Sequence record: PQ227241.1
Strand: one strand, 5' to 3'
DNA: 64,000 bases
The position numbers and the translations under genes were made by a program. The notes beneath the pieces are model-generated. The model worked only from the letters and a program-made list of their open reading frames with translations. It was not told where the DNA came from and did not search any database. Below, in pieces: positions 2,373 through 60,502 of this stretch (the stretch's first letter is position 1; every line of letters starts with the position of its first letter).

Positions 2373-5428
<3,056 letters not shown>

Positions 5429-8043: not shown

Positions 8044-9159
8044 TTACTTTAGATTTTCATCGCATACATTGAGTATGGCAGTCAAATTACGACATGTTAA
8101 TTTAAATAGGTCGTGATAAGGAATAGCCAACCAATCAACATATGTTTCTACCAATGAAACAAGTTCTTGTATTTCTCTATCAGGTCGCCCTTCATTACGA
8201 GCACGTGTTAGTTCATCTCTAAACCTGATTAATGCACCTTTAAGAGTCCTTAACCGTTCATTTCGACGAGTACGCATTGATGCAGCATTTGCACGATTGA
8301 TCTTATCAACTACCTTAACAACTCGATCAATAATACTTTCAGTAACTTGATGGTTGAAATGTTCAAATTCTATTTCGACTGGTAGTGGTCTAGGGGTTTC
8401 TTCAGATGGAACTAACCGTGAAGAAATATCCCTACACTGATCATAAGCACTTGCATTCTTATCGGGATTATAGTTAATTACAATTTGATGATTACCTAGC
8501 AAATGCAATGATACAAATCGATTACCTTGATCGCGATAAACAGATGGTGTGGTTATTTTAGTTGGGGCACTATTTAATAGTAGTTCTGCTAAAGCATCTG
8601 GACTAGCATTTGGATTCATATACGAAGGTATGATATTAGCTGGCCTTAGAATCACATTGTCTAATCCATTGATATACCCATCAACTACTGTCTCCAATAC
8701 GCGTAAGTGAGATAACAAATTAGCACTATTGGTAATAGGTTTATATCTAACACTTAAGTTCTGAATACGAGTTGTAATTAGAAATGTAGGATTCTTATTT
8801 TTACGAGTTCTAGCACGACTGTTAACTCGTAAGTTTTCTGCTCGAATTGCAACATATTCAGCAGTAGCTGCTAGCACTACTCCACTATCCATCAGTTTCT
8901 CAATAGTGGTAACAAATAGTTTTATAACTCGATCAATAACATGTTTAATAGTATCACTAATATCTTCAGTAGATACAACATCCTCTAATTCTTTGATAAC
9001 CCCTTGGATCTGATTATAATCTTCCATACCGCCTAATAGATCCATCACTCGCCTAGCTAACGCTTCATCGCCTGATAATAAATCTGCAAGTCTTTTAGGT
9101 TCATCAAGATCAATAATCATTTCATCTGGAGTATCTTTATAAATATCAATTAATTCCAT
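8044..9159 (-). CDS. Head protein (gp96 orthologue)
   Basis: 371 aa; VSTE-DI processing-type motif followed by an amphipathic helix, as in neighbouring paralogues; TTATG-TTAGGAG upstream. Confidence 0.7.
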   Translation of the reverse strand: MELIDIYKDTPDEMIIDLDEPKRLADLLSGDEALARRVMDLLGGMEDYNQIQGVIKELEDVVSTEDISDTIKHVIDRVIKLFVTTIEKLMDSGVVLAATAEYVAIRAENLRVNSRARTRKNKNPTFLITTRIQNLSVRYKPITNSANLLSHLRVLETVVDGYINGLDNVILRPANIIPSYMNPNASPDALAELLLNSAPTKITTPSVYRDQGNRFVSLHLLGNHQIVINYNPDKNASAYDQCRDISSRLVPSEETPRPLPVEIEFEHFNHQVTESIIDRVVKVVDKINRANAASMRTRRNERLRTLKGALIRFRDELTRARNEGRPDREIQELVSLVETYVDWLAIPYHDLFKLTCRNLTAILNVCDENLK

Positions 9160-9177
9160 TGCTAACTCCTAACATAA

Positions 9178-9201
9178 GACGGGACTCTTCCGAGCCCCGT
9201 C
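9178..9201. terminator. Terminator hairpin between gp95 and gp96
   Basis: GACGGG-ACTC-TTCC-GAGC-CCCGTC, flanked by CATAA and TATG. Confidence 0.65.
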
Positions 9202-9220
9202 GATATGTCGTCACTTATCA

Positions 9221-34924: not shown

Positions 34925-35385
34925 TTAATGATCTGAGATATAGTCGTCTTGAGGCCACTTTCACGGAAGATAGTGGCCACATCCTACATCCAAACTTTGG
35001 TTATGATAAGTTAACTGAAGATGATACACACTTAGATAGACTATTATCGACAGTAGGGGCAGTAAGACCGTCTACAGCAGCACGTTTAACAAGAGAAGCA
35101 TATCTACTTGATTACGATATCGGTTCACCAGAAAACGGACCCATGTGGTTAAATAAAGTAAATCCTAAAGAGGATTTTATCGAAGGTGGGTTGAGAAGGA
35201 GACTGACTAGAGATTTCTTCAAGTATAAAGTAGGTAGCTTATCTAATATGTCATTAACTGAATTCTTTGAATTAGCTTATTCTGAGGTAGAATACATAAT
35301 TGAATTATGTAGGAATATTACTCATAATGAGGCTGTTAATAACAATAACCAGTTAAATGAATTAAACAAGCCGTTAACTAAATAA
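34888..35385 (+). CDS. -1 frame extension of gp77 (gp76 region; the track shows only the last 80 aa)
   Basis: Frame open from 34870 to the stop at 35383-35385. No ATG, GTG or TTG for 91 codons before 35143. It is the -1 frame at T_TTT_TTT. Confidence 0.65.
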   Translation, partial: YFGGLEVKPDGVVNDLRYSRLEATFTEDSGHILHPNFGYDKLTEDDTHLDRLLSTVGAVRPSTAARLTREAYLLDYDIGSPENGPMWLNKVNPKEDFIEGGLRRRLTRDFFKYKVGSLSNMSLTEFFELAYSEVEYIIELCRNITHNEAVNNNNQLNELNKPLTK

Positions 35386-35402
35386 AAAAAAATAAAGACA
35401 GG

Positions 35403-35424
35403 CCCCTCTCCACATGGAGAGGGG
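35403..35424. terminator. Bidirectional terminator between convergent units
   Basis: CCCCTCTCC-ACAT-GGAGAGGGG followed by TTTATG. Confidence 0.8.
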
Positions 35425-35435
35425 TTTATGTCGTC

Positions 35436-35579
35436 TTACTTACGTGCAAAGCTAGCTACAAGACCTTTGATAGCTAGAACGACCATCCAGGCCGTTAACC
35501 CTTTTATTGGGTGGATATCAACCCGTTCTTCGATATCCAGATTACCCTCACTATTGATTACCTCAATTCGTACTTGCAT
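35436..35579 (-). CDS. Small 47-aa protein with hydrophobic C-terminal helix
   Basis: Hand translation MQVRIEVINSEGNLDIEERVDIHPIKGLTAWMVVLAIKGLVASFARK*; AGGAG SD 6 nt upstream; below the track cutoff. Confidence 0.7.
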   Translation of the reverse strand: MQVRIEVINSEGNLDIEERVDIHPIKGLTAWMVVLAIKGLVASFARK

Positions 35580-36401: not shown

Positions 36402-36480
36402 AGTTTATAAGCTATAACTACAATTGTAATCATAATCAATTTTTTCTTCATTGTAAATACCCTATAGTTTTATCACATTT

Positions 36481-36498
36481 GTGATATACTGTTTAAAA
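36481..36498 (-). promoter_or_regulatory. phiKZ-type early promoter
   Basis: TTTTAAACAGTATATCAC on the minus strand; close to the TATATTAC early consensus with upstream TTTAA. Confidence 0.6.
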
Positions 36499-36530
36499 TG
36501 CTTTAAATACAAAAAATAAAAAAAAGCATA

Positions 36531-42804: not shown

Positions 42805-43179
42805 TTGGAATTTATTATGGCATTCACACTGTTAGCTAATCAGCCAGATTCAGGTGAATCTGTTTATTATGAACCAGGGTTCAGATTAATTATTGAGACT
42901 CATTTGAATATCTTACGTAATGTCAGATCCACACGTATTCAGATTCCACCTGAACTGTATTACCAGTTCGAAGGAAACTTTTATGGATACATGGCAGAAC
43001 GCCGTGTCAATCCTGATATGTGGTGGATTCAAATGCGTGTTAATGGTTTAGTTAGCCCTTATGATTTTGGTAAAGTTCTAAGGGATCCTTCAGCTAATGA
43101 TTACACCAGCTATTTAATCATACCGAATAACGACATGATTCAACACCTCGTTAGCTTATATCAAACTAAAAAGTTTTAA
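42805..43179 (+). CDS. Probable baseplate wedge subunit, T4 gp53/P2 gpX-like
   Basis: 124 aa; FYGY...DMWWIQMRVNGLVSP resembles the YG...LWW.I...N....P pattern (inference). Confidence 0.5.
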   Translation: MEFIMAFTLLANQPDSGESVYYEPGFRLIIETHLNILRNVRSTRIQIPPELYYQFEGNFYGYMAERRVNPDMWWIQMRVNGLVSPYDFGKVLRDPSANDYTSYLIIPNNDMIQHLVSLYQTKKF

Positions 43180-43185
43180 AGCAAG

Positions 43186-43209
43186 CCAGGGGACCCTTAG
43201 GCCCCCTGG
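43186..43209. terminator. Bidirectional terminator between convergent genes
   Basis: CCAGGGG...CCCCTGG followed by TTTATG. Confidence 0.7.
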
Positions 43210-43220
43210 TTTATGCCGTG

Positions 43221-44612
43221 TTACAGTAGACGACCCATCATTTGGTTTCCACCTAGATTCATCATCGCGGTGTTACCATTACCAGCTAGAGCGGGGTTTA
43301 GTGCTTGTGCAAATCCACCACCCATCGGCATTTGATTGCCCATGAGTTGCATCATTTGCGGATGCATATTAGCCATCATTGGTTGCTGTGGCTGCATCAT
43401 CCCAGGCATTGCAAAGTTATTGTTCATCATAACAGGTTGTTGCATCATTCCGGGTTGAGCAAATTGGTTTTTCTGCCCAGCGTTTAGAAGATCTTGGATA
43501 GATGCTTTATTGCTAGTTTGAACTTGTTGTGCGGGACGTTGAGGTGCCTGAGTCATTGCTACAGCTTGACTCATAGATGGATTAACATTCACAGTTGTGC
43601 CTACTGGTACACGTGTAGAAGTAGTTTGTTCTTTAGCAGTATTACCCACTTTAACTACACTATCCTTTTTCTGGACAGGAATTTGGGCAACTGGGTTTAC
43701 AGTTTCAGAAGCTTCTTCTTCTACTTCATTGCTGACTCCTTCATTACCATCAAGAGAGGGGATCTCACGTTGCATCTTTGCAAAATCAGCAATCACCTTC
43801 TCATCAACTTTTGAATAAGGTTGAATAGCATCATCGAAGATCAGGCGATACTTATCAATAACACTATTTAGTTGAGTAGTGATTTTGTTAAATGCCTGGA
43901 TAAGACATACAAAATAAGGTGCTACCCGCTCAACTGTTCCTGCTGAATATTCAGTTGGTGAATCACCAAATGGTACAACTAGTTTAAATAGTTCGATTAG
44001 AACTGGCCGCTGTTTCTTAGGTACATTTACTCCAAGGATATCATCTTTAGAATAAAGATCCTCTACGATAGGGAACCGAATAACGCAGATACGGTTAACT
44101 GTCTTCCCATCAAATTTACCATTTGCTTTTAGATACACGCTTACAAAACGTGAACGTTTTTCAGCAGCTTTGACAACCTTATTAAACCACTCAATGGTAT
44201 CTGGCTTAGCACCGGATAGTTTCTTTAGGAAGTCTGAACATTCTGGTGGAATGTCTTTATGCAGAGTGGAGTCGGCAGCTACTTCTAAAATACGTGAAGT
44301 AAGATACTTCACAGTAAACATTAGATTAGCCTTAACTTGACGCTGCATATGCTGTAGTACTTGAGAAGTACCTAGCCGAGAGATCTTTTCAGATAGCGGG
44401 TGGAAGGCGATGTAATCATCGCCTAGCCCTTTACGAAGCCAATCTTTAGTAGGTACCACTAGTCGCTTACCATCTACCTTTGCAGGTGCAGGTCGACCAA
44501 GTGGATCGAGAATACTGATCATATCCTCTTCACCTACTTTGTATCGGAAAGCAGGTAATACTTGATCACTATAGAACTTGGAAAGAGAAATCGTAGGCAT
44601 TGTTATCACCAA
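43221..44612 (-). CDS. Conserved chimallivirus protein with M/Q/N/G-rich disordered tail (gp70 orthologue)
   Basis: 463 aa, immediately after PicA; low-complexity last ~130 aa. Confidence 0.7.
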   Translation of the reverse strand: MVITMPTISLSKFYSDQVLPAFRYKVGEEDMISILDPLGRPAPAKVDGKRLVVPTKDWLRKGLGDDYIAFHPLSEKISRLGTSQVLQHMQRQVKANLMFTVKYLTSRILEVAADSTLHKDIPPECSDFLKKLSGAKPDTIEWFNKVVKAAEKRSRFVSVYLKANGKFDGKTVNRICVIRFPIVEDLYSKDDILGVNVPKKQRPVLIELFKLVVPFGDSPTEYSAGTVERVAPYFVCLIQAFNKITTQLNSVIDKYRLIFDDAIQPYSKVDEKVIADFAKMQREIPSLDGNEGVSNEVEEEASETVNPVAQIPVQKKDSVVKVGNTAKEQTTSTRVPVGTTVNVNPSMSQAVAMTQAPQRPAQQVQTSNKASIQDLLNAGQKNQFAQPGMMQQPVMMNNNFAMPGMMQPQQPMMANMHPQMMQLMGNQMPMGGGFAQALNPALAGNGNTAMMNLGGNQMMGRLL

Positions 44613-47949: not shown

Positions 47950-48690
47950 TTAGAAGGAAGGCATATCCTCATCAAAAGCTGAGTCATTATAACTATTATT
48001 AGCCGGCTTAGCATAACTATTATTGCCGCCGTTGTTATAGTTATTGCGTTGACCACCGTTATTGTAACCGCCGCTATTACCATTACCCTGATTGAAATTA
48101 GCAGGGTTAGATACACCTTTAGCATCTGGATCGAATTCAGTTACTAGAAGATGCATTACTAGTTTATATGCGGGGTCTAGGAAACCGTATGCATAAGCAT
48201 CGGACATTTCCTTAGGTGATAGTTGACTACCATCTGCTTTGCGGATATCATGGAATTGGGATGGGCCAAAGAAGAATTTGATCTTTGGACGATCAGGTTG
48301 AGTGCTTAGCACTGCGATGTAAATTCGACCATCTTGTGCACGGCCAACATGTAGCTTAGAAAGCTCAATAAAATTATCACGCTTCTTACCAGCTACGAAG
48401 TTATTGCGGTAAACAAAGACACGTTCAGTATCTTCAGTTTTACCTTCAATTAAGTCCATTGCAAACTTAATGAAACATGCAAAGGTTGCTAGGTCAGTAT
48501 TGAACTCAATTTTACCATGGTCTTTATCACCAGGTACATTAGTACGAACAGTAACCCGTGGTTGGTTTTTAAACAGACCAAAACGCAGCGTCGGTCGTTT
48601 TTGAGAACCCTCACATGGTTTGGCATGTAGCCAAGTATTCATTACATTAAAAGGGTTAACTACGGGTGCATTAGACTGCTGTTGTGACAT
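47950..48690 (-). CDS. chmC: Nucleus-associated RNA-binding protein ChmC-like (gp67 orthologue)
   Basis: 246 aa immediately upstream of gp68; two-repeat beta/alpha core and a G/N/Y-rich tail with acidic tip (DEDMPSF); synteny with the recalled PhiPA3 gp61. Confidence 0.65.
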   Translation of the reverse strand: MSQQQSNAPVVNPFNVMNTWLHAKPCEGSQKRPTLRFGLFKNQPRVTVRTNVPGDKDHGKIEFNTDLATFACFIKFAMDLIEGKTEDTERVFVYRNNFVAGKKRDNFIELSKLHVGRAQDGRIYIAVLSTQPDRPKIKFFFGPSQFHDIRKADGSQLSPKEMSDAYAYGFLDPAYKLVMHLLVTEFDPDAKGVSNPANFNQGNGNSGGYNNGGQRNNYNNGGNNSYAKPANNSYNDSAFDEDMPSF

Positions 48691-55062: not shown

Positions 55063-55281
55063 TTACGACTTCAACCATTCTTCTAATGGCGGTAAATACT
55101 TCTCATGCGCCCAGTTAATAATTGTTTCTACAACAGGACCCTGTAATTCAAGGTTACCTGAGATTTCATGTGGTTCATCAATAGATAGAACCCATGTATG
55201 TGGAGCAATGCGTTCAGTTGCTTTGGTTAAATACACATCAGGCATTAACGTTAAATTCAATTGATCGCCGTCAAAATCCGC
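55063..55281 (-). CDS. Non-virion RNA polymerase beta' N-terminal subunit, exon 2 (gp56.1)
   Basis: Frame begins ADFDGDQLNLTLMPDV right after the intron terminal G; 72 aa. Confidence 0.92.
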   Translation of the reverse strand, partial: ADFDGDQLNLTLMPDVYLTKATERIAPHTWVLSIDEPHEISGNLELQGPVVETIINWAHEKYLPPLEEWLKS

Positions 55282-56671
55282 CGTTATGTTCAGTATGGGT
55301 CGTTAATCCATACCCGGTAGTATAATTACCACATGATAATTACCACCTGCTGCATGTCGCCATGCAGACCAGACTATATCTTCACCCTTCCTTTCGGAGT
55401 AGGGTGTCTCCCATTTCGAGTCACTTGACTCTACATCCTATTTCTAGGACCGGCGCACCTGATACCGTAATAGTCGTTGAACCTTCTCCTATTCCTAAAT
55501 GGAATGTTACGGAGCTTGGCTGCTGATTGTCCCTACCTAATCTTTTTCAAACCTTGGCTTTGTCTTTCGACTCGCAGTGGTAGATTAGTTTAACAGGATA
55601 TCCCAGCAATTAGAGAGAACTCATCCCAATGATTACTCATTGGGGGAACTAGACTTGATTAACTTAATAAGGTATTTATCAAGCACCCCATTCTTTTCAA
55701 AGATTGCTCTTCGAATAGTATTCGGATGCTTAATACCGACATCTCTTGCAAAGTGTGGAATACTTGGATACACTTTGGTAGTGTTCAAGATGGTGTCAGT
55801 TACTTCAATTGGAGTGCCTTTTCCATTACTAGGTTTTCCAAATGAGGCTTCAATTTCTTTCTGAGTATATTTAGGGAAATCTTCAGGATTAGCAGTATAT
55901 GAGAATACCAGACCATCCATGATTTCCTTACTACCTCTAACTAGATGGTAATAGGCTTTATTACGTTTAGTACCTAGTGCAAGTTCCATTTCTGCTAAGT
56001 TATGAAACACATGTAATGTCTTAGTCTTATAGTCTAAAACATAAACTGTCTTGGTACTTTCACGATCAGCAATCTTAGTCTCACCGGTAATAAATTCAAA
56101 TGTGAATCTATTTCTATACGGCTTAGTCTTATGGTCACGTATAATAACCCAAACCGTATTTTTATTAACTCCTAATACCCGAGCAAGTTCATTCATCGAG
56201 TAATAAGTAGTCTTTTCACCAGTGGTAACATCAGTTGCAATTACCCGTCTATTTTCTTTTCTTAATCCATTTTTGTAAGCATGCTCAATGTTTTCACCAC
56301 GAGTCATCCATTCCAAATTGGATGGTAAGTTATTATGTTTGTTGCCGTCTTTATGATTGACTTCATATGTTGGTCCAGGAGATGGACCATGGAATGCAGT
56401 ACAAACTAGAATATGCGCTCCCTTACTTTTTGATGTCTTTTCATCATTTTTTGCACCTATATTGAGATATGTCCCAATTGATGTTTTAGTAAGGAAGAAA
56501 TTACATATTCTATTTAACCGCTTATGACGAATCGTTCCTAAGTTACTAGCCTCATAAGCTGAGTATCCAGGAATATCTCGCCATTCAATTTTAAATGAAG
56601 CCGGATCAAAGACGGACACTACTCCGTTTTTGTTCCATTGTCTTTTACCTTATTTGGTTATTCAATTGTCC
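55282..56671 (-). ncRNA. Group I intron (1390 nt) carrying an HNH homing endonuclease gene
   Basis: Exon ends in U (AAT) and the intron ends ...TGAACATAACG. Core P/Q/R/S-like elements lie at 55282-55632. Splicing restores KAPN|ADFDGD. Confidence 0.92.
55633..56619 (-). CDS. Intron-encoded NUMOD4-HNH homing endonuclease with C-terminal NUMOD1-like repeats (gp56 orthologue)
   Basis: EWRDIPGYSAYEASNLG (NUMOD4); HILVCTAFHG...VNHKDGNKHNNLPSNLEW.T..EN..HA (HNH); GTG start. Confidence 0.9.
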   Translation of the reverse strand: MSVFDPASFKIEWRDIPGYSAYEASNLGTIRHKRLNRICNFFLTKTSIGTYLNIGAKNDEKTSKSKGAHILVCTAFHGPSPGPTYEVNHKDGNKHNNLPSNLEWMTRGENIEHAYKNGLRKENRRVIATDVTTGEKTTYYSMNELARVLGVNKNTVWVIIRDHKTKPYRNRFTFEFITGETKIADRESTKTVYVLDYKTKTLHVFHNLAEMELALGTKRNKAYYHLVRGSKEIMDGLVFSYTANPEDFPKYTQKEIEASFGKPSNGKGTPIEVTDTILNTTKVYPSIPHFARDVGIKHPNTIRRAIFEKNGVLDKYLIKLIKSSSPNE

Positions 56672-57916
56672 ATTAGGCGCTTTAAGGCATAAAACTGACA
56701 TGCTGATAGAATTATCATTAATGTCATCTTTTACTTTAGTAATAAAGAACTGCTGCGTAGATCCACGTTGAAGCGTTGGATTTCGGTGAAAAGTACAACC
56801 CATCCCTTTATAAGGGGCTGCTTCTGCAATTAGCTCTTTAAATAGATCTGCAATGATTTGGTTATATTGAAGTACATTCTCATATACAAATGAGAATGCT
56901 TCACGAGTTGTCATGTTAAACTTTGCTTTTAGTTTATTGGTTAGATGATACTTTAATAATTGACAACCTACCCCCCAAGGGATATGTAGTTCATCATAAT
57001 CATGCGGGTCACTAATAGAAGTGATTACTGCACGTGCCGTAGCGTTGAGACGAGCACCAAACATGTGACGCCGAGCAAGACCAGGCTTTTGAGCAATTCG
57101 TGATTTTGCGTAGATCTCGTAGAACTGGCCATATAGTCTTAGTCCTCGCATAGTCCTATTCTGAGCTTTAATTGGACTAAGTGGTACAGATGATGCATCA
57201 ATACTAGCGAAGGTTAAGGTAGCATCAATTGCTGCTTCAATTGGTTTATCTAAGTAAGTACCAGATGTGGTTGATTCTGCTACGAAACAGAGTTTAGAAG
57301 GAACTGGTAAATATTTAGGGAATAACTTATCTTTATTCTGAGCAACGAATTGAGCGAATTCGGATTTATTATTAGAGATAATATTTGCATCTAGTAGGAA
57401 TTGGAAGATCTCATTGAAATTATCAATGAAGTGATTTAATCCTCTTTCAAATCCTCGATGCAGTAGCCTATCTACTTTCCTGCGTGTTTCCTTAGAACCA
57501 ATAGATTCTACATCGTATCGATAAGAAGTATCAGTTAGATATGCTAAGAAATCGAATTCTTTAGTTACTAGATATCCGGTTAGCATAATGATTAAACGTG
57601 GGTTAATTAGGCTACGTACATGTTTTGGTGTACGAACCCACATTGATGGTTCGATAGGGCGGCTAGAAGTATTGACAACTGGAGTATTACAAATATCACA
57701 GATTACTCCGAGTTTATGTGCGTCTTCGATTGCTCGACAATCACAGCTTACACTACTTTCAATTGCTTCTGAATCTTGGAAATGAGAATAGAAATGTCTA
57801 TCAAATTCTTCTTTCTCATCTGAGTTACTCGTATTGTAATCATTGGCATAAATTCGTTTACCCGTAAATTGATCATGTACTTCATCATGATCAACAACTT
57901 TGGCATAAAGACCCAT
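56672..57916 (-). CDS. Non-virion RNA polymerase beta' N-terminal subunit, exon 1 (gp55)
   Basis: Zn ribbon CDC...CDIC, RHMFGARLNATARAVI, FHRNPTLQRGS; 415 aa, spliced total 487 aa; AGGAG SD. Confidence 0.92.
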
Positions 57917-57951
57917 ACCAAACTCCTATTTATCGATTAACAAAAAAAGGA

Positions 57952-57984
57952 GATATAAGCGGCCCCCGAAGGAGCCGCTATATC
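57952..57984 (-). terminator. Terminator of the chimallin transcript
   Basis: GATATA-GCGGC-TCCTTCGGGG-GCCGC-T-TATATC followed by CCTTTTTTTG on the minus strand. Confidence 0.8.
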
Positions 57985-57989
57985 AGTTT

Positions 57990-58310
57990 TTACAATGGAC
58001 CACCAACGGAGCCTGGCCCGATCCTAGCGTCGTCTACAAAGCTTAACCTCCGCTCTTCTCTGTAGCGCTCTGACACTAGAACCTTTTACCATCCATTGTA
58101 GTTTTTTGATCACACGTCACCTTTTGAGTAACTCCTTTCGGTTAAGTGATCTATCATCCTCGTGTAGTGATAGGTCGACCTAGACTAAGTCCACTAGTCG
58201 ATTACTTCACGGAACCTACTCCTAACCGTTATCACTGAAGTGAACCGGGTCGCAGTATTAGAATCGGGATGTTACTTATTTAACATCCCTATCTACCGAG
58301 GTATTTCCTA
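57990..58310 (-). ncRNA. Candidate structured RNA in the chimallin 3' UTR
   Basis: No ORF longer than ~15 codons found by hand; several 8-9 bp stems, some nested; more GC-rich than other intergenic spacers. Confidence 0.5.
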
Positions 58311-60191
58311 TTAGTACCAGGTACCCGGTGCGTTATAGGAAGGAGCGCCGTAAGTTTGACCCATGCTGCCAGCCATACCAACTTGTGCACTACCAGAAAC
58401 AGCCATGTTACCCATACCGGTGTAACCAGCGAAGCGCTGTTGACCGAAGTTGGTAATTAGGTTTTCCATGGTTACAGTTACACCAGCTGCTGCTGCTGCG
58501 GCATCCATTGCGGTGATGAATTTCGGGTTAAAGGTTAGACGACGAGCACGACCAGTATAGGTAACGTTACCTAGGTACATCTTGTCGAAGCCTTTACTGT
58601 TATTCATACGACGCACAATGTGGTCATTACCTACCTGAGTAGCATACCAGGTCTTCCACTCTTGGTCATTACCTTCAGACATGTTCATGGCACCTAGAAC
58701 GTCGAGATCACGACGGTCGCTTAGTTCACCATGCTCATCAGTGTAGTGACCGAGGTCTACTTCATGATGGTTGTCAAAGATAATCGGACCAGCTTCAGCT
58801 AGATTATAGAACTGACGGAAATCAGTGCCGTATAGGTTAGTTAGAGCTTGGAAGATCAGACTAACTGCACGAGCTTGGTTTACGCCACCAGCTGCATCTA
58901 GGACGACTTGCTCAATAGCTGAGTTGTCGCCCATTGGATCGATATCGATCTGGAATGCAGGGTTCTGGTTAACCATCTTGTTCATTAGCATTACGAAGTT
59001 GCTGTCGTCTGCCATGAATGCTTCGGTGCGAGTTTCAATCGCTTTACCTAGCTCTGAGTAATAACCAAGTGCACCAATATCACGCATCTTGCTAGTAGCG
59101 ATCTTCGGCATTAGGGTACGAGCCCATGCCTGGGATGCAGTTGCACGATACGCATTACCGAGTGCGAACAGCCACATTTCTAGAGTCCATGCTTGGATCC
59201 AGGACGCCTTACGAACGTCAGTAATAACGATGTAAGGAGTGAACTGCGGAGGTAGAACTGCACCAGGTAGAGTTACGCCAAACATGCCTTGTTGCTGGCC
59301 AGTGGTCGGAGTCCAATGTAGATCTACGAATAGACTAACTTGGTTTAGCTGGCTATCGGTATCATAGAACTCGTTCTCAGGTACGTTGGTTTTCTTACCA
59401 CGGCTAGTGGAGATGACCAGGTCAGAACGGATCGGATTACCACAGCTATCTTTAACCGGAATACCATTGTAGTCTAGATTGCAGGTAAGCTGTTCGTTTT
59501 CTGCTTTGATGTGGGTCGCAATAGAGAACGGAGTCTCATTGTTACGACGCGCAATAGCATCTTCACAGATATTAACGGATTCAACTAGTAGGTTCTTAAC
59601 AGCTAGTTCATCTTTGAAGTCGAAGTCAGCATACACTGCACGGGGACCGGCAGATAGTACTTCTAGACCAGGGATGTTGTAACGGTTCCGTAGGAACTCG
59701 CCGATCTTGCTCCAGTATTGAGCAGTGAATACATCACGCGGTAGTACCTTCTCTTCAATGATGTCATCAGTTAGACCATTGTTGATTTTGTGGGTACGGG
59801 GACGGATGCGAGTACCAGGTAGGTTATCGAGTACTAGAGTACGAACGAATGCCTTCATGGAACCATTGATATCTTTAGCTAGTTTAACAATGAGTAGACC
59901 AGCCATACCCACTTGTTGTGCATCGCGATCGAAACGATGGATATCGAAGTCATCAGGTAGGTCCTGATGGCGGATTGCTTCTTCTTTTACTTTAGTGAAT
60001 ACTTGTAGGGCATCTGCTGAACGAGCATCAGAGCCATCTAGCCGACCAGAGCGACGCATTAGATGGTTAATGCCAGTAGTGGACCCAGGTGCGCCAGCCG
60101 GACGTTGAGCTTGACGTTGTGCAGTGGGTTGCGGAGCCGGAGCGGTAGCTTGAGTTTGAACGGTGCCGATTTCGTTTTCGTTAACAGCCAT
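58311..60191 (-). CDS. chmA: Chimallin, major phage nuclear shell protein (gp54 orthologue)
   Basis: 626 aa, recognised sequence ([21 protein letters not shown]...), directly upstream of gp55, with highly-expressed-gene codon bias. Confidence 0.9.
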
Positions 60192-60280: not shown

Positions 60281-60502
60281 TTTTTTTCATTACAACATAG
60301 ACGCTATAATCTGCTATCAGCAGATCGTAACGAACACTATGTTCACTACATATTATTACAATCTGAGTATTATTTATTTTTCATCTTACAATTTCCATAT
60401 CTTCTTTTTTGAGTTTATGGGTATAAAGTTTGAATCCAGAAACTAATTTACGTCAGTCCTGTATTAAATAATAACTATCAGTATTTTTATAAAATGCAGT
60501 TA

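Follow-up and report, generated by a model that had tools for sequence, protein, structure and literature searches.

A conserved three-domain RNA in the 3′ untranslated region of the chimallin message of phiKZ-like jumbo phages

The DNA considered here is a window of 64,000 nucleotides (nt) from sequence record PQ227241.1. We focus on a single gap in it, that between chmA and gp55, two genes that are both read from the minus strand and lie 394 nt apart. Across the 3′ untranslated region (UTR) of chmA, whose message we take to be very abundant and early, blastn gives 100% identity to Pseudomonas phage PA7 and 96% to phiKZ. The locus contains the following main features.

58311..60191, minus strand: chmA (chimallin, the nuclear shell protein), 626 aa; from the ORF list and Pfam PF25677 Chimallin_Phikzvirus (E=0, full length)
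57942-58310, minus strand: chmA 3′ UTR, which holds the structured RNA element and the intrinsic terminator
57942..57984, minus strand: chmA intrinsic terminator, a GC-rich hairpin (57953-57984) with a UUCG loop, then UCC and seven U (57942-57948)
56672..57916, minus strand: gp55 exon 1 (nvRNAP beta/beta′ subunit); from the ORF list, the phiKZ PHIKZ055 annotation, and alignment with the PA1C and PhiPA3 genes

The gp55 gene is split by an HNH-endonuclease insertion, inside which a group I intron is detected at 55350-55670 on the minus strand (Rfam RF00028, 85.3 bits, E=8e-22), about 1.3 kb from the UTR element; in PA1C and PhiPA3, gp55 is uninterrupted. The ChmC gene occupies 47950-48690 on the minus strand. 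It is thus found about 9.3 kb downstream of the element, and not directly beyond it as the original prediction, made from the letters of this DNA, had stated.

With its GC-rich hairpin and U-run on the transcribed strand, the stretch at 57942-57984 has the make-up of an intrinsic terminator. It is nearly identical across the phiKZ, PA1C, and PhiPA3 groups, and related versions occur in D6, Psa21, 201phi2-1, and Viktualia. A simple terminator scan made no call at 57953-57984 because the U-run begins 3 nt beyond the stem. As the hairpin and the U-run close the region, the interval 57990-58310 represents the chmA 3′ UTR upstream of the terminator. Only 26 nt separate the U-run from the start codon of gp55. 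A promoter of its own would hardly fit in between, and gp55 is therefore probably transcribed by read-through of the terminator.

The original prediction had described this interval as a non-coding, multi-stem element on the chmA message and as more GC-rich than the other spacers. Both descriptions hold. The GC content of the chmA 3′ UTR amounts to 0.43-0.48, against 0.27-0.30 in the spacer upstream of chmA, and the element lies on the sense strand and ends at the chmA terminator. This strand folds with −130.8 kcal/mol (z = −5.75), the antisense strand with z = −2.85. The consensus fold was obtained with RNAalifold from 14 sequences, ten of the phiKZ type and four of the PA1C type, and shows three separately closed domains, listed here from the chmA stop onward.

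58301..58310, minus strand: A-rich unpaired linker from the chmA stop to domain I; from alignments, unconserved between phage groups
58159..58300, minus strand: domain I, a 4-bp closing helix P1 and three arms; from the consensus fold
58108..58151, minus strand: domain II, a three-way junction with closing helix GAUCAC/GUGAUC; from the consensus fold
58099..58107, minus strand: A-run linker that joins domains II and III and varies in length among aligned homologues
57993..58098, minus strand: domain III, a long-range closing helix CAAUGGAU/GUCCAUUG, a long arm, and a short hairpin

In domain I, helix P1 is formed by the pairing of 58297-58300 with 58159-58162 and encloses the arms Ia (58259-58295), Ib (58217-58257), and Ic (58167-58210), together with an unpaired and invariant GGUUC at 58212-58216. 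Domain II contains the inner hairpins CC-GAAA-GG and GUUAC/GUGAC and carries a Shine-Dalgarno-like AAAGGAG. The latter is complementary to CUCCUUU in the terminator tail and is paired with it by RNAalifold on the full alignment; this pairing is invariant across the alignment and hence offers no variation with which to probe covariation. Domain III is built from the long arm IIIa (58020-58083) and the short hairpin IIIb (58002-58017). Its GGUAAA and GCUCCG are unpaired and invariant, and the patch 58060-58084 is hypervariable. At least eight of the consensus pairs are G-U on the sense strand and correspond to A-C mismatches on the opposite strand. Because of these pairs and the asymmetry in z-scores, we assign the function to the sense RNA rather than to the DNA.

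Covariation had been proposed as a test of the element, and it is present. Two covariance models, R1 and R2, were built from the two halves of the element, and 15 sequences were realigned by each. In domains II and III (47 pairs), 100% of the 658 cells are paired, compared to 30-44% with slid partners, and three pairs have changed on both sides. Domain I likewise comprises 47 pairs, with 98.9% of cells paired and nine double-changed pairs, a count matched by 0 of 500 shuffles. Over the whole element, 99-100% of stem positions are paired and 12 pairs carry compensatory double changes, numbers to be read in the light of folds drawn from the same alignments, few clades, and model-built alignments that lean to the model. 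Variable columns make up 15% in stems and 32% in unpaired regions.

At least five separate lineages or comparisons contribute compensatory events. Many pairs differ in this way between the phiKZ type and the PA1C type, W10-2 alone has a compensatory change in arm Ic, and HPP-Temi alone has exchanged A-U for G-C in domain II. In domain III, a phiKZ sub-lineage has gone from GGU/AUC to GAG/CUC, and the closing helix shows an A-U to G-C change. In domain II of PhiPA3, GAUCAC/GUGAUC has become AACCAC/GUGGUU.

All of the stems that had been listed from the single sequence were found at their positions, and five of the seven belong to the consensus fold of the 14 homologues, with compensatory changes in several of these five. 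They are the hairpins GGGATGTTA/TAACATCCC and TCGACCTAG/CTAGTCGA, the nested CTAGTG/CGCTAG and CTACA/TGTAG stems, and the long-range TACAATGGA/TCCATTGTA, which is the closing helix of domain III. The other two fall outside the consensus fold. The GATCTATCA/TGATAGGTC stem is not supported; it contains an invariant C-A mismatch and is broken in PA1C-type sequences. The ACTTCA/TGAAGT helix, on the other hand, can be paired in homologues (A-U, G-U, or G-C) but competes with a conserved hairpin, which is kept structurally in PhiPA3 (UCAC-UUCA-GUGA replaced by CUC-GAAA-GAG). At best, this helix represents an alternative conformer.

A blastn search against a phage collection retrieved the chmA 3′ UTR region in 57 records. 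About 50 phiKZ-type genomes match at 95.5-100%, and seven Pawinskivirus-type records (PA1C, PS119XW, HPP-Temi, BRkr, phiLBG22, HHBS36_1) match at 85-87% along some 360 nt. The match to phiHQ covers the 3′ 56% of the region, and that to PhiPA3 falls into two pieces. All homologues are located between chmA and the gp55 homologue. Three genera of jumbo phages that infect Pseudomonas aeruginosa have thus preserved the RNA nearly without change. It is confined to the phiKZ, PA1C, and PhiPA3 groups, a narrower range than the Chimalliviridae-wide one that had been implied.

When the window is compared with PA1C, the UTR is 84-90% identical, whereas protein identity amounts to 49.5% for ChmA and 68% for gp55. 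Identity falls to 39% at third codon positions and to only 0.35-0.44 at four-fold degenerate sites, from which we conclude that neutral sites are saturated. Over 60 kb of this comparison, alignable genes are 64-70% identical, and the UTR RNA is the sole stretch of at least 100 nt above 76% identity. The conserved block runs from the 5′ strand of helix P1, about 11 nt past the chmA stop, to the U-run; as its limits fall at the first helix and at the U-run, it can be considered a transcript-level unit. Part of the between-genus identity could stem from lateral transfer among phages with P. aeruginosa as their common host, yet such transfer is insufficient on its own because pairing is perfectly maintained across about 50 substitutions.

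The element is single-copy, and a second copy is absent from the PA7-like, PA1C, PhiPA3, and Psa21 genomes. A 17-mer scan of IMG/VR gave chance matches only. With a gapped domain II pattern, only PhiPA3 was recovered from IMG/VR and nothing from metagenome and bacterial-genome collections, and two 18-mer scans yielded one chance match, rejected by both models, and nothing further. Judged by these exact-pattern scans, the element is neither host-derived nor widespread.

The interval had also been called free of ORFs. Strictly speaking, short ORFs do exist, but none of them behaves as a gene, as their frames are shifted or they lack a ribosome-binding site. Those crossing the linker between domains II and III are shifted in frame by the A-run. 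The sole frame open in all 14 aligned sequences spans 20-22 codons (MVK/N...LQRRAEVKLCR); its AUG is not preceded by a Shine-Dalgarno sequence, and the frame does not occur in PhiPA3. Where the frame varies, the changes are non-synonymous; elsewhere, every codon position is fixed, the third included. No ORF in the chmA 3′ UTR combines the conserved frame, start context, and substitution pattern of a small gene, and the conserved small protein that the original prediction had named as counterevidence was not found. In the jumbo-phage literature surveyed, no small peptide from this UTR is reported from ribosome profiling or mass spectrometry.

Next to proteins, known RNA classes have to be considered. 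Searches with Rfam 15 returned nothing for 57942-58310 at E up to 10 and nothing for seven related loci at E up to 5, and no riboswitch, aptamer, or cis-regulatory class matched the chmA 3′ UTR. ARAGORN found no tRNA or tmRNA in the window or in related loci. The Rfam group I model gave no match on the UTR at E up to 10, and this silence is meaningful because the same model detects the gp55 intron, which serves as a positive control. A group I intron was rejected on these grounds, and also because RNA contigs (see below) contain no joints and the element follows a stop codon, where no gene is interrupted. An RsmA/CsrA sponge was dropped as well, since the GGA-like motif is found in one loop and is unconserved in the PA1C type. 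A mimic of a CRISPR repeat was set aside too, as domain Ib seems to have only the first 7 nt, and not the hairpin, in common with the type I-F repeat of P. aeruginosa.

The UTR element is thus firmly shown to be a real sense-strand, non-coding, three-domain RNA under purifying selection, outside the described families. It is a modular, independently folding RNA of about 310 nt with a shared terminator. We consider it a new RNA family of a known general kind, namely, the UTR-borne structured phage RNAs, and one with an unusual size, degree of conservation, and genomic setting.

The order of chmA followed by gp55 is general in chimalliviruses, and the spacer between them varies considerably, as can be seen from its length and contents in different phages.

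85-106 nt: Noxifer, D6, the EL-like P. aeruginosa phage DT01, Goslar, and RAY (terminator only)
394 nt: phiKZ type
427 nt: PA1C type
435 nt: Psa21
515 nt: PhiPA3
536 nt: phiHQ
635-875 nt: 201phi2-1, Phabio, and Viktualia (contain small ORFs)

D6 has a terminator 90% identical to that of its close relative Psa21 and lacks the module that the latter carries. In PhiPA3, domain I is recognized by R2 (E=2e-10) and has a 157-nt insertion in arm Ic, domain II is matched by R1 at E of about 0.04-0.1, and the third domain differs. In phiHQ, domains II and III are present (E=3e-42), and about 310 nt stand in for domain I; half of this stretch is 73% identical to the Psa21 spacer. A Psa21-type RNA module is thus fused to domains II and III in place of domain I. 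The difference between D6 and Psa21, together with the domain swaps in PhiPA3 and phiHQ, indicates that the content of this slot is exchangeable.

The Psa21-type module deserves a short description of its own. Its covariance model, R3, was built from six members, which it scores at 100-105 bits; up to E=10, it matches neither the window nor PA1C nor PhiPA3. The helices covary clearly, and a pseudoknot of UACGGU with ACCGUA was judged by eye. The module also occurs in five metagenome contigs and in the unrelated Ralstonia phage RP13, where it fills a 280-nt unannotated gap directly upstream of tRNA-Leu. Homology with the UTR RNA was considered on account of a 29-nt string that looks alike by eye and was rejected because R3 has no match in the window; hence, we treat the two as separate families. 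The module bears some resemblance to a group I core, but this identity was rejected, as Rfam is silent and the derived helix order misfits the P3/P7 arrangement of group I.

Turning to expression, contigs from four RNA-seq runs (four separate studies) contain gp55, the UTR, and chmA unbroken and without joints. They are 96-97% identical to the window and, for that reason, presumably derive from phiKZ itself. The contigs are compatible with transcription of the element and with terminator read-through, showing presence and not RNA ends or abundance, with DNA carry-over as a possible source. They argue against efficient splicing, although rare forms can be missed. Enustun et al. report ChmC eCLIP peaks in the chmA-gp55 gap of PhiPA3, the very gap that holds homologs of domains I and II. 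As ChmC binds phage mRNAs broadly, such a peak may merely reflect abundance. The phiKZ dRNA-seq, Grad-seq, and ONT-cappable-seq papers name no RNA at the chmA locus, nor is one described there in the 201phi2-1 transcriptome paper, the antisense-oligomer screen, or the 2026 jumbo-phage review.

Several known systems can be placed next to this RNA. By its location between a stop codon and the mRNA's own terminator, it resembles 3′UTR-derived small RNAs such as CpxQ and SdhX in enterobacteria, and it would likewise share the 3′ end of its parent. In Pseudomonas phage PAK_P3, ncRNA1 and ncRNA2, of about 120-210 nt, were reported to be processed from a 3′ UTR (Putzeys 2024). Unlike base-pairing small RNAs, however, the UTR RNA is much larger (about 310 nt in three covarying domains) and has no evident seed or target. 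With GOLLD and ROOL, which are typically found in the neighborhood of tRNA genes, it has in common that it is large, multi-domain, and phage-borne, with GNRA loops and conserved junctions, and the module in the Psa21 and phiHQ slots adjoins a tRNA gene in RP13 just as they do. It differs from them by the absence of an Rfam match, by a size of at most half theirs, and by being embedded in an mRNA 3′ UTR.

Within the same phage group, Grad-seq and ONT-cappable-seq of phiKZ have described 3′UTR_PHIKZ298, 5′UTR_p40, and the PHIKZ221 and PHIKZ302 leaders. These are UTR-borne structured RNAs as well and are abundant in infection, but they measure 70-200 nt, arise mostly from premature termination in 5′ UTRs, and none is located at chmA. 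Group I introns are similar to the UTR RNA in size, multi-domain build, and long-range helices; in contrast to them, it has no RF00028 match, shows no splice joint in the RNA runs, and interrupts no gene. Finally, as in HK022 put and terminator riboswitches, a folded nascent RNA stands directly upstream of a terminator that gp55 transcription probably must pass. The put RNAs, however, are about 70 nt long and lie near the promoter, no ligand-sensing family matches the UTR RNA, and relatives read through without it.

The explanation that we favor, with a probability of roughly 45%, is that of an RNA gene that rides on the early chmA transcript by means of its promoter and terminator and acts as a protein-bound RNA. 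On this reading, it forms the 3′ part of the very abundant early chmA message and stops at the chmA terminator. The chmA promoter and terminator would then form an expression platform for the RNA gene, which would not be a regulator of chmA. Possibly, cleavage within the A-rich linker past the stop codon sets the RNA free from the mRNA. Since loops and junctions are conserved, recognition by a partner is suggested, and they most likely bind protein, be it ChmC, a host factor, or both, yielding a stable bound RNA (scaffold or decoy) in early infection. ChmC is the sole candidate partner with any data, namely, the eCLIP peaks. In sum, we infer that the UTR RNA accumulates as a discrete species, binds protein, and acts in trans. 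This reading is preferred because many phages with normal expression of chmA and gp55 have an empty slot, and because unrelated modules fill it in others, domains swap as units, and one module lives free-standing.

A wider version of the same idea is speculative, and we deem it unlikely as it stands. Here, the gap between the chmA stop and the terminator would be a dedicated RNA-gene slot in nucleus-forming Pseudomonas phages, with exchangeable folded RNAs serving as decoys or scaffolds on the strongest early transcript. Such RNAs would be plentiful before the protein shell forms. They might, for example, sequester a defense or RNA-handling factor of P. aeruginosa, or nucleate ChmC-RNA assemblies for mRNA export and nucleus maturation.

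Among the other explanations, a cis element of the chmA mRNA comes closest to ours, and we consider it doubtful but possible. It would act in 3′-end stability, export from the early vesicle or nucleus, localization, or translation control, possibly via ChmC. The RNA is part of the most abundant early mRNA and uses the same terminator, it is kept in 57 of the 57 matching phage records of three groups, and the eCLIP peaks in the homologous PhiPA3 gap also fit this role. Nevertheless, comparison between phages speaks rather against a function purely in cis, be it for chmA or for gp55, because the same layout occurs with spacers of 85-106 nt or with unrelated modules. Chimalliviruses of the same gene order do without any such element, D6 lacks what Psa21 has, domains are exchanged as modules in phiHQ and PhiPA3, and an unrelated module from the same slot stands free in RP13; moreover, stability alone leaves the invariant loops and junctions unexplained. 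More improbable is a conditional terminator, riboswitch- or put-like, that controls read-through into gp55 and the following genes. The probable dependence of gp55 on read-through, the RNA-run contigs that continue across the terminator, and the conserved AAAGGAG, which RNAalifold pairs with the terminator-tail CUCCUUU, all suit such a switch. Yet terminator-only phages require read-through just the same, no covarying alternative antiterminator helix was found (AAAGGAG/CUCCUUU being invariant), riboswitch and cis-regulatory Rfam classes do not match, and about 310 nt in three closed domains would be oversized for the task.

The pattern of swaps could also be that of a mobile RNA, selfish or relic (a degenerate intron or ribozyme, for instance), that has spread laterally among co-infecting P. 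aeruginosa jumbo phages without benefit to them. Presence varies between relatives, modules are swapped, between-genus identity far exceeds that of the flanks, and a true group I intron with an HNH endonuclease resides in gp55 of the same genome. We find this quite unlikely, given that the group I model scores 85 bits on that intron and remains silent on the UTR, that splice joints are lacking in the four RNA runs, and that the element has one copy per genome, no mobility gene, and, being located after a stop codon, no exon context. The compensatory upkeep of its structure across about 50 substitutions points the same way. Two further options are very improbable. A small protein could be invoked for the frame that stays open in 14 of 14 aligned sequences and for the small ORFs annotated here in some GenBank records; the missing Shine-Dalgarno sequence, the absence from PhiPA3, and a substitution pattern with a non-synonymous variable part and third positions frozen elsewhere speak against it, and the other ORFs are shifted by the variable A-run or by single-base indels. 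A DNA-level site (origin, packaging signal, or protein-binding site) would account for the dense inverted repeats, but not for the sense-strand G-U pairs with their A-C counterparts, the unequal folding of the two strands, or a conserved block that stops exactly at the U-run of the transcript.

As to the significance of this RNA, chmA, the founding gene of the phage nucleus, is among the phage genes transcribed earliest and most abundantly. The best-conserved stretch of at least 100 nt in 60 kb between phiKZ-like and PA1C-like phages is an untranslated RNA and not a protein gene, which implies that the UTR RNA is under strong constraint. In the engineering of therapeutic phiKZ-like phages, this "spacer" might otherwise be deemed dispensable. 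If the RNA acts in cis, it would provide a handle on the stabilization, export, or localization of the chmA mRNA. If it acts in trans, as we favor, it would add an RNA player to the early takeover by jumbo phages and offer a defined ligand for RNA binding by ChmC. Should the gap even prove to be a dedicated slot for exchangeable RNAs, it would reveal a new class of RNA-based takeover or counter-defense modules in jumbo phages.

Domain III of the element contains a hypervariable patch (window 58060-58084), in which about 10-12 differences within 25 nt are found among phiKZ-type phages that are otherwise 96-100% identical, with pairing kept across the variants. W10-2 has the PA1C-type version of this patch, suggesting either recombination or an ancestral state.

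Several phiKZ-type GenBank records annotate small hypothetical proteins within the chmA 3' UTR, as do the records of two further comparison loci:

Small hypothetical proteins annotated in the chmA 3' UTR (GenBank)
L003:3474-3581 and 3727-3915, HPP-Temi
L006:3341-3583, opposite strand, Psa21 gp057

These annotations are probably spurious, given that the region covaries and its reading frames are shifted.

Outside the UTR, other short patches are shared with PA1C. Upstream of chmA, about 35-46 nt at window 60334-60379 match PA1C at 92% identity, but at a distant position in that genome. Contigs assembled from public RNA-seq runs branch here into several partners; the sequence is therefore repeated in the genome and may be a shared early-promoter element. 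Four more patches of 44-58 nt (36465-36508, 43170-43225, 35381-35438, and 9154-9209) are 83-93% identical against a background of 64-70%. Two of them are syntenic with PA1C, and the counterparts of the other two lie at distant sites. Such patches may represent promoters, terminators, or elements of small RNAs.

Downstream of the element, gp55, encoding an nvRNAP subunit, is in two pieces (window 55072-56671, minus strand), whereas its counterparts in PA1C and PhiPA3 are uninterrupted.

Features downstream of the element (window coordinates, minus strand)
near 56671, end of gp55 exon 1
55633-56619, HNH/NUMOD endonuclease ORF within the gp55 insertion
55350-55670, group I intron core within the gp55 insertion (Rfam, 85.3 bits)
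55072-55281, gp55 exon 2
47950-48690, homologue of PhiPA3 gp61 (ChmC), 246 aa, 60% identical over 196 residues

One RNA-seq contig stops at the exon 1 boundary, about 29 nt past 56700; for the phiKZ introns, no splicing was evident under the conditions used (Putzeys 2024). Between the element and the ChmC homologue further downstream there are about 9.3 kb.

In some relatives, the chmA-gp55 slot contains a second structured RNA family, unrelated to the element and without a match in Rfam, which also occurs elsewhere.

Occurrences of the Psa21-type module
L006:3400-3558, Psa21, chmA 3' UTR
L004:3333-3502, phiHQ, chmA 3' UTR
L034:2427-2601, Ralstonia phage RP13, adjoining tRNA-Leu
L036, L038, L039, and L040, metagenome contigs, 3' of ORFs

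Its conserved blocks are UCAAUUGC, with the palindromic core CAAUUG, UAAU-GUCUGAC, and GCCAAAGUC, and a conserved 27-nt loop includes ACUUACGGUGAUGUAA. Three helices of the module covary, and it apparently forms a pseudoknot with a downstream AAACCGU. On L036 (WBZR01030842.1), ~2 kb around the motif (about 233-2311) contain hardly any ORFs of at least 50 aa on its sense strand; several non-coding RNAs may be clustered in this stretch.

Small protein-coding ORFs are present in the slots of three other phages:

L007:3484-4050, 201phi2-1 gp106
L008:3537-3809, Phabio_83
L011:3389-3850, Viktualia

In all three, the ORF is preceded by a structured stretch of 200-280 nt with its own terminator-like hairpin. 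The chmA-gp55 slot thus takes protein genes besides RNA.
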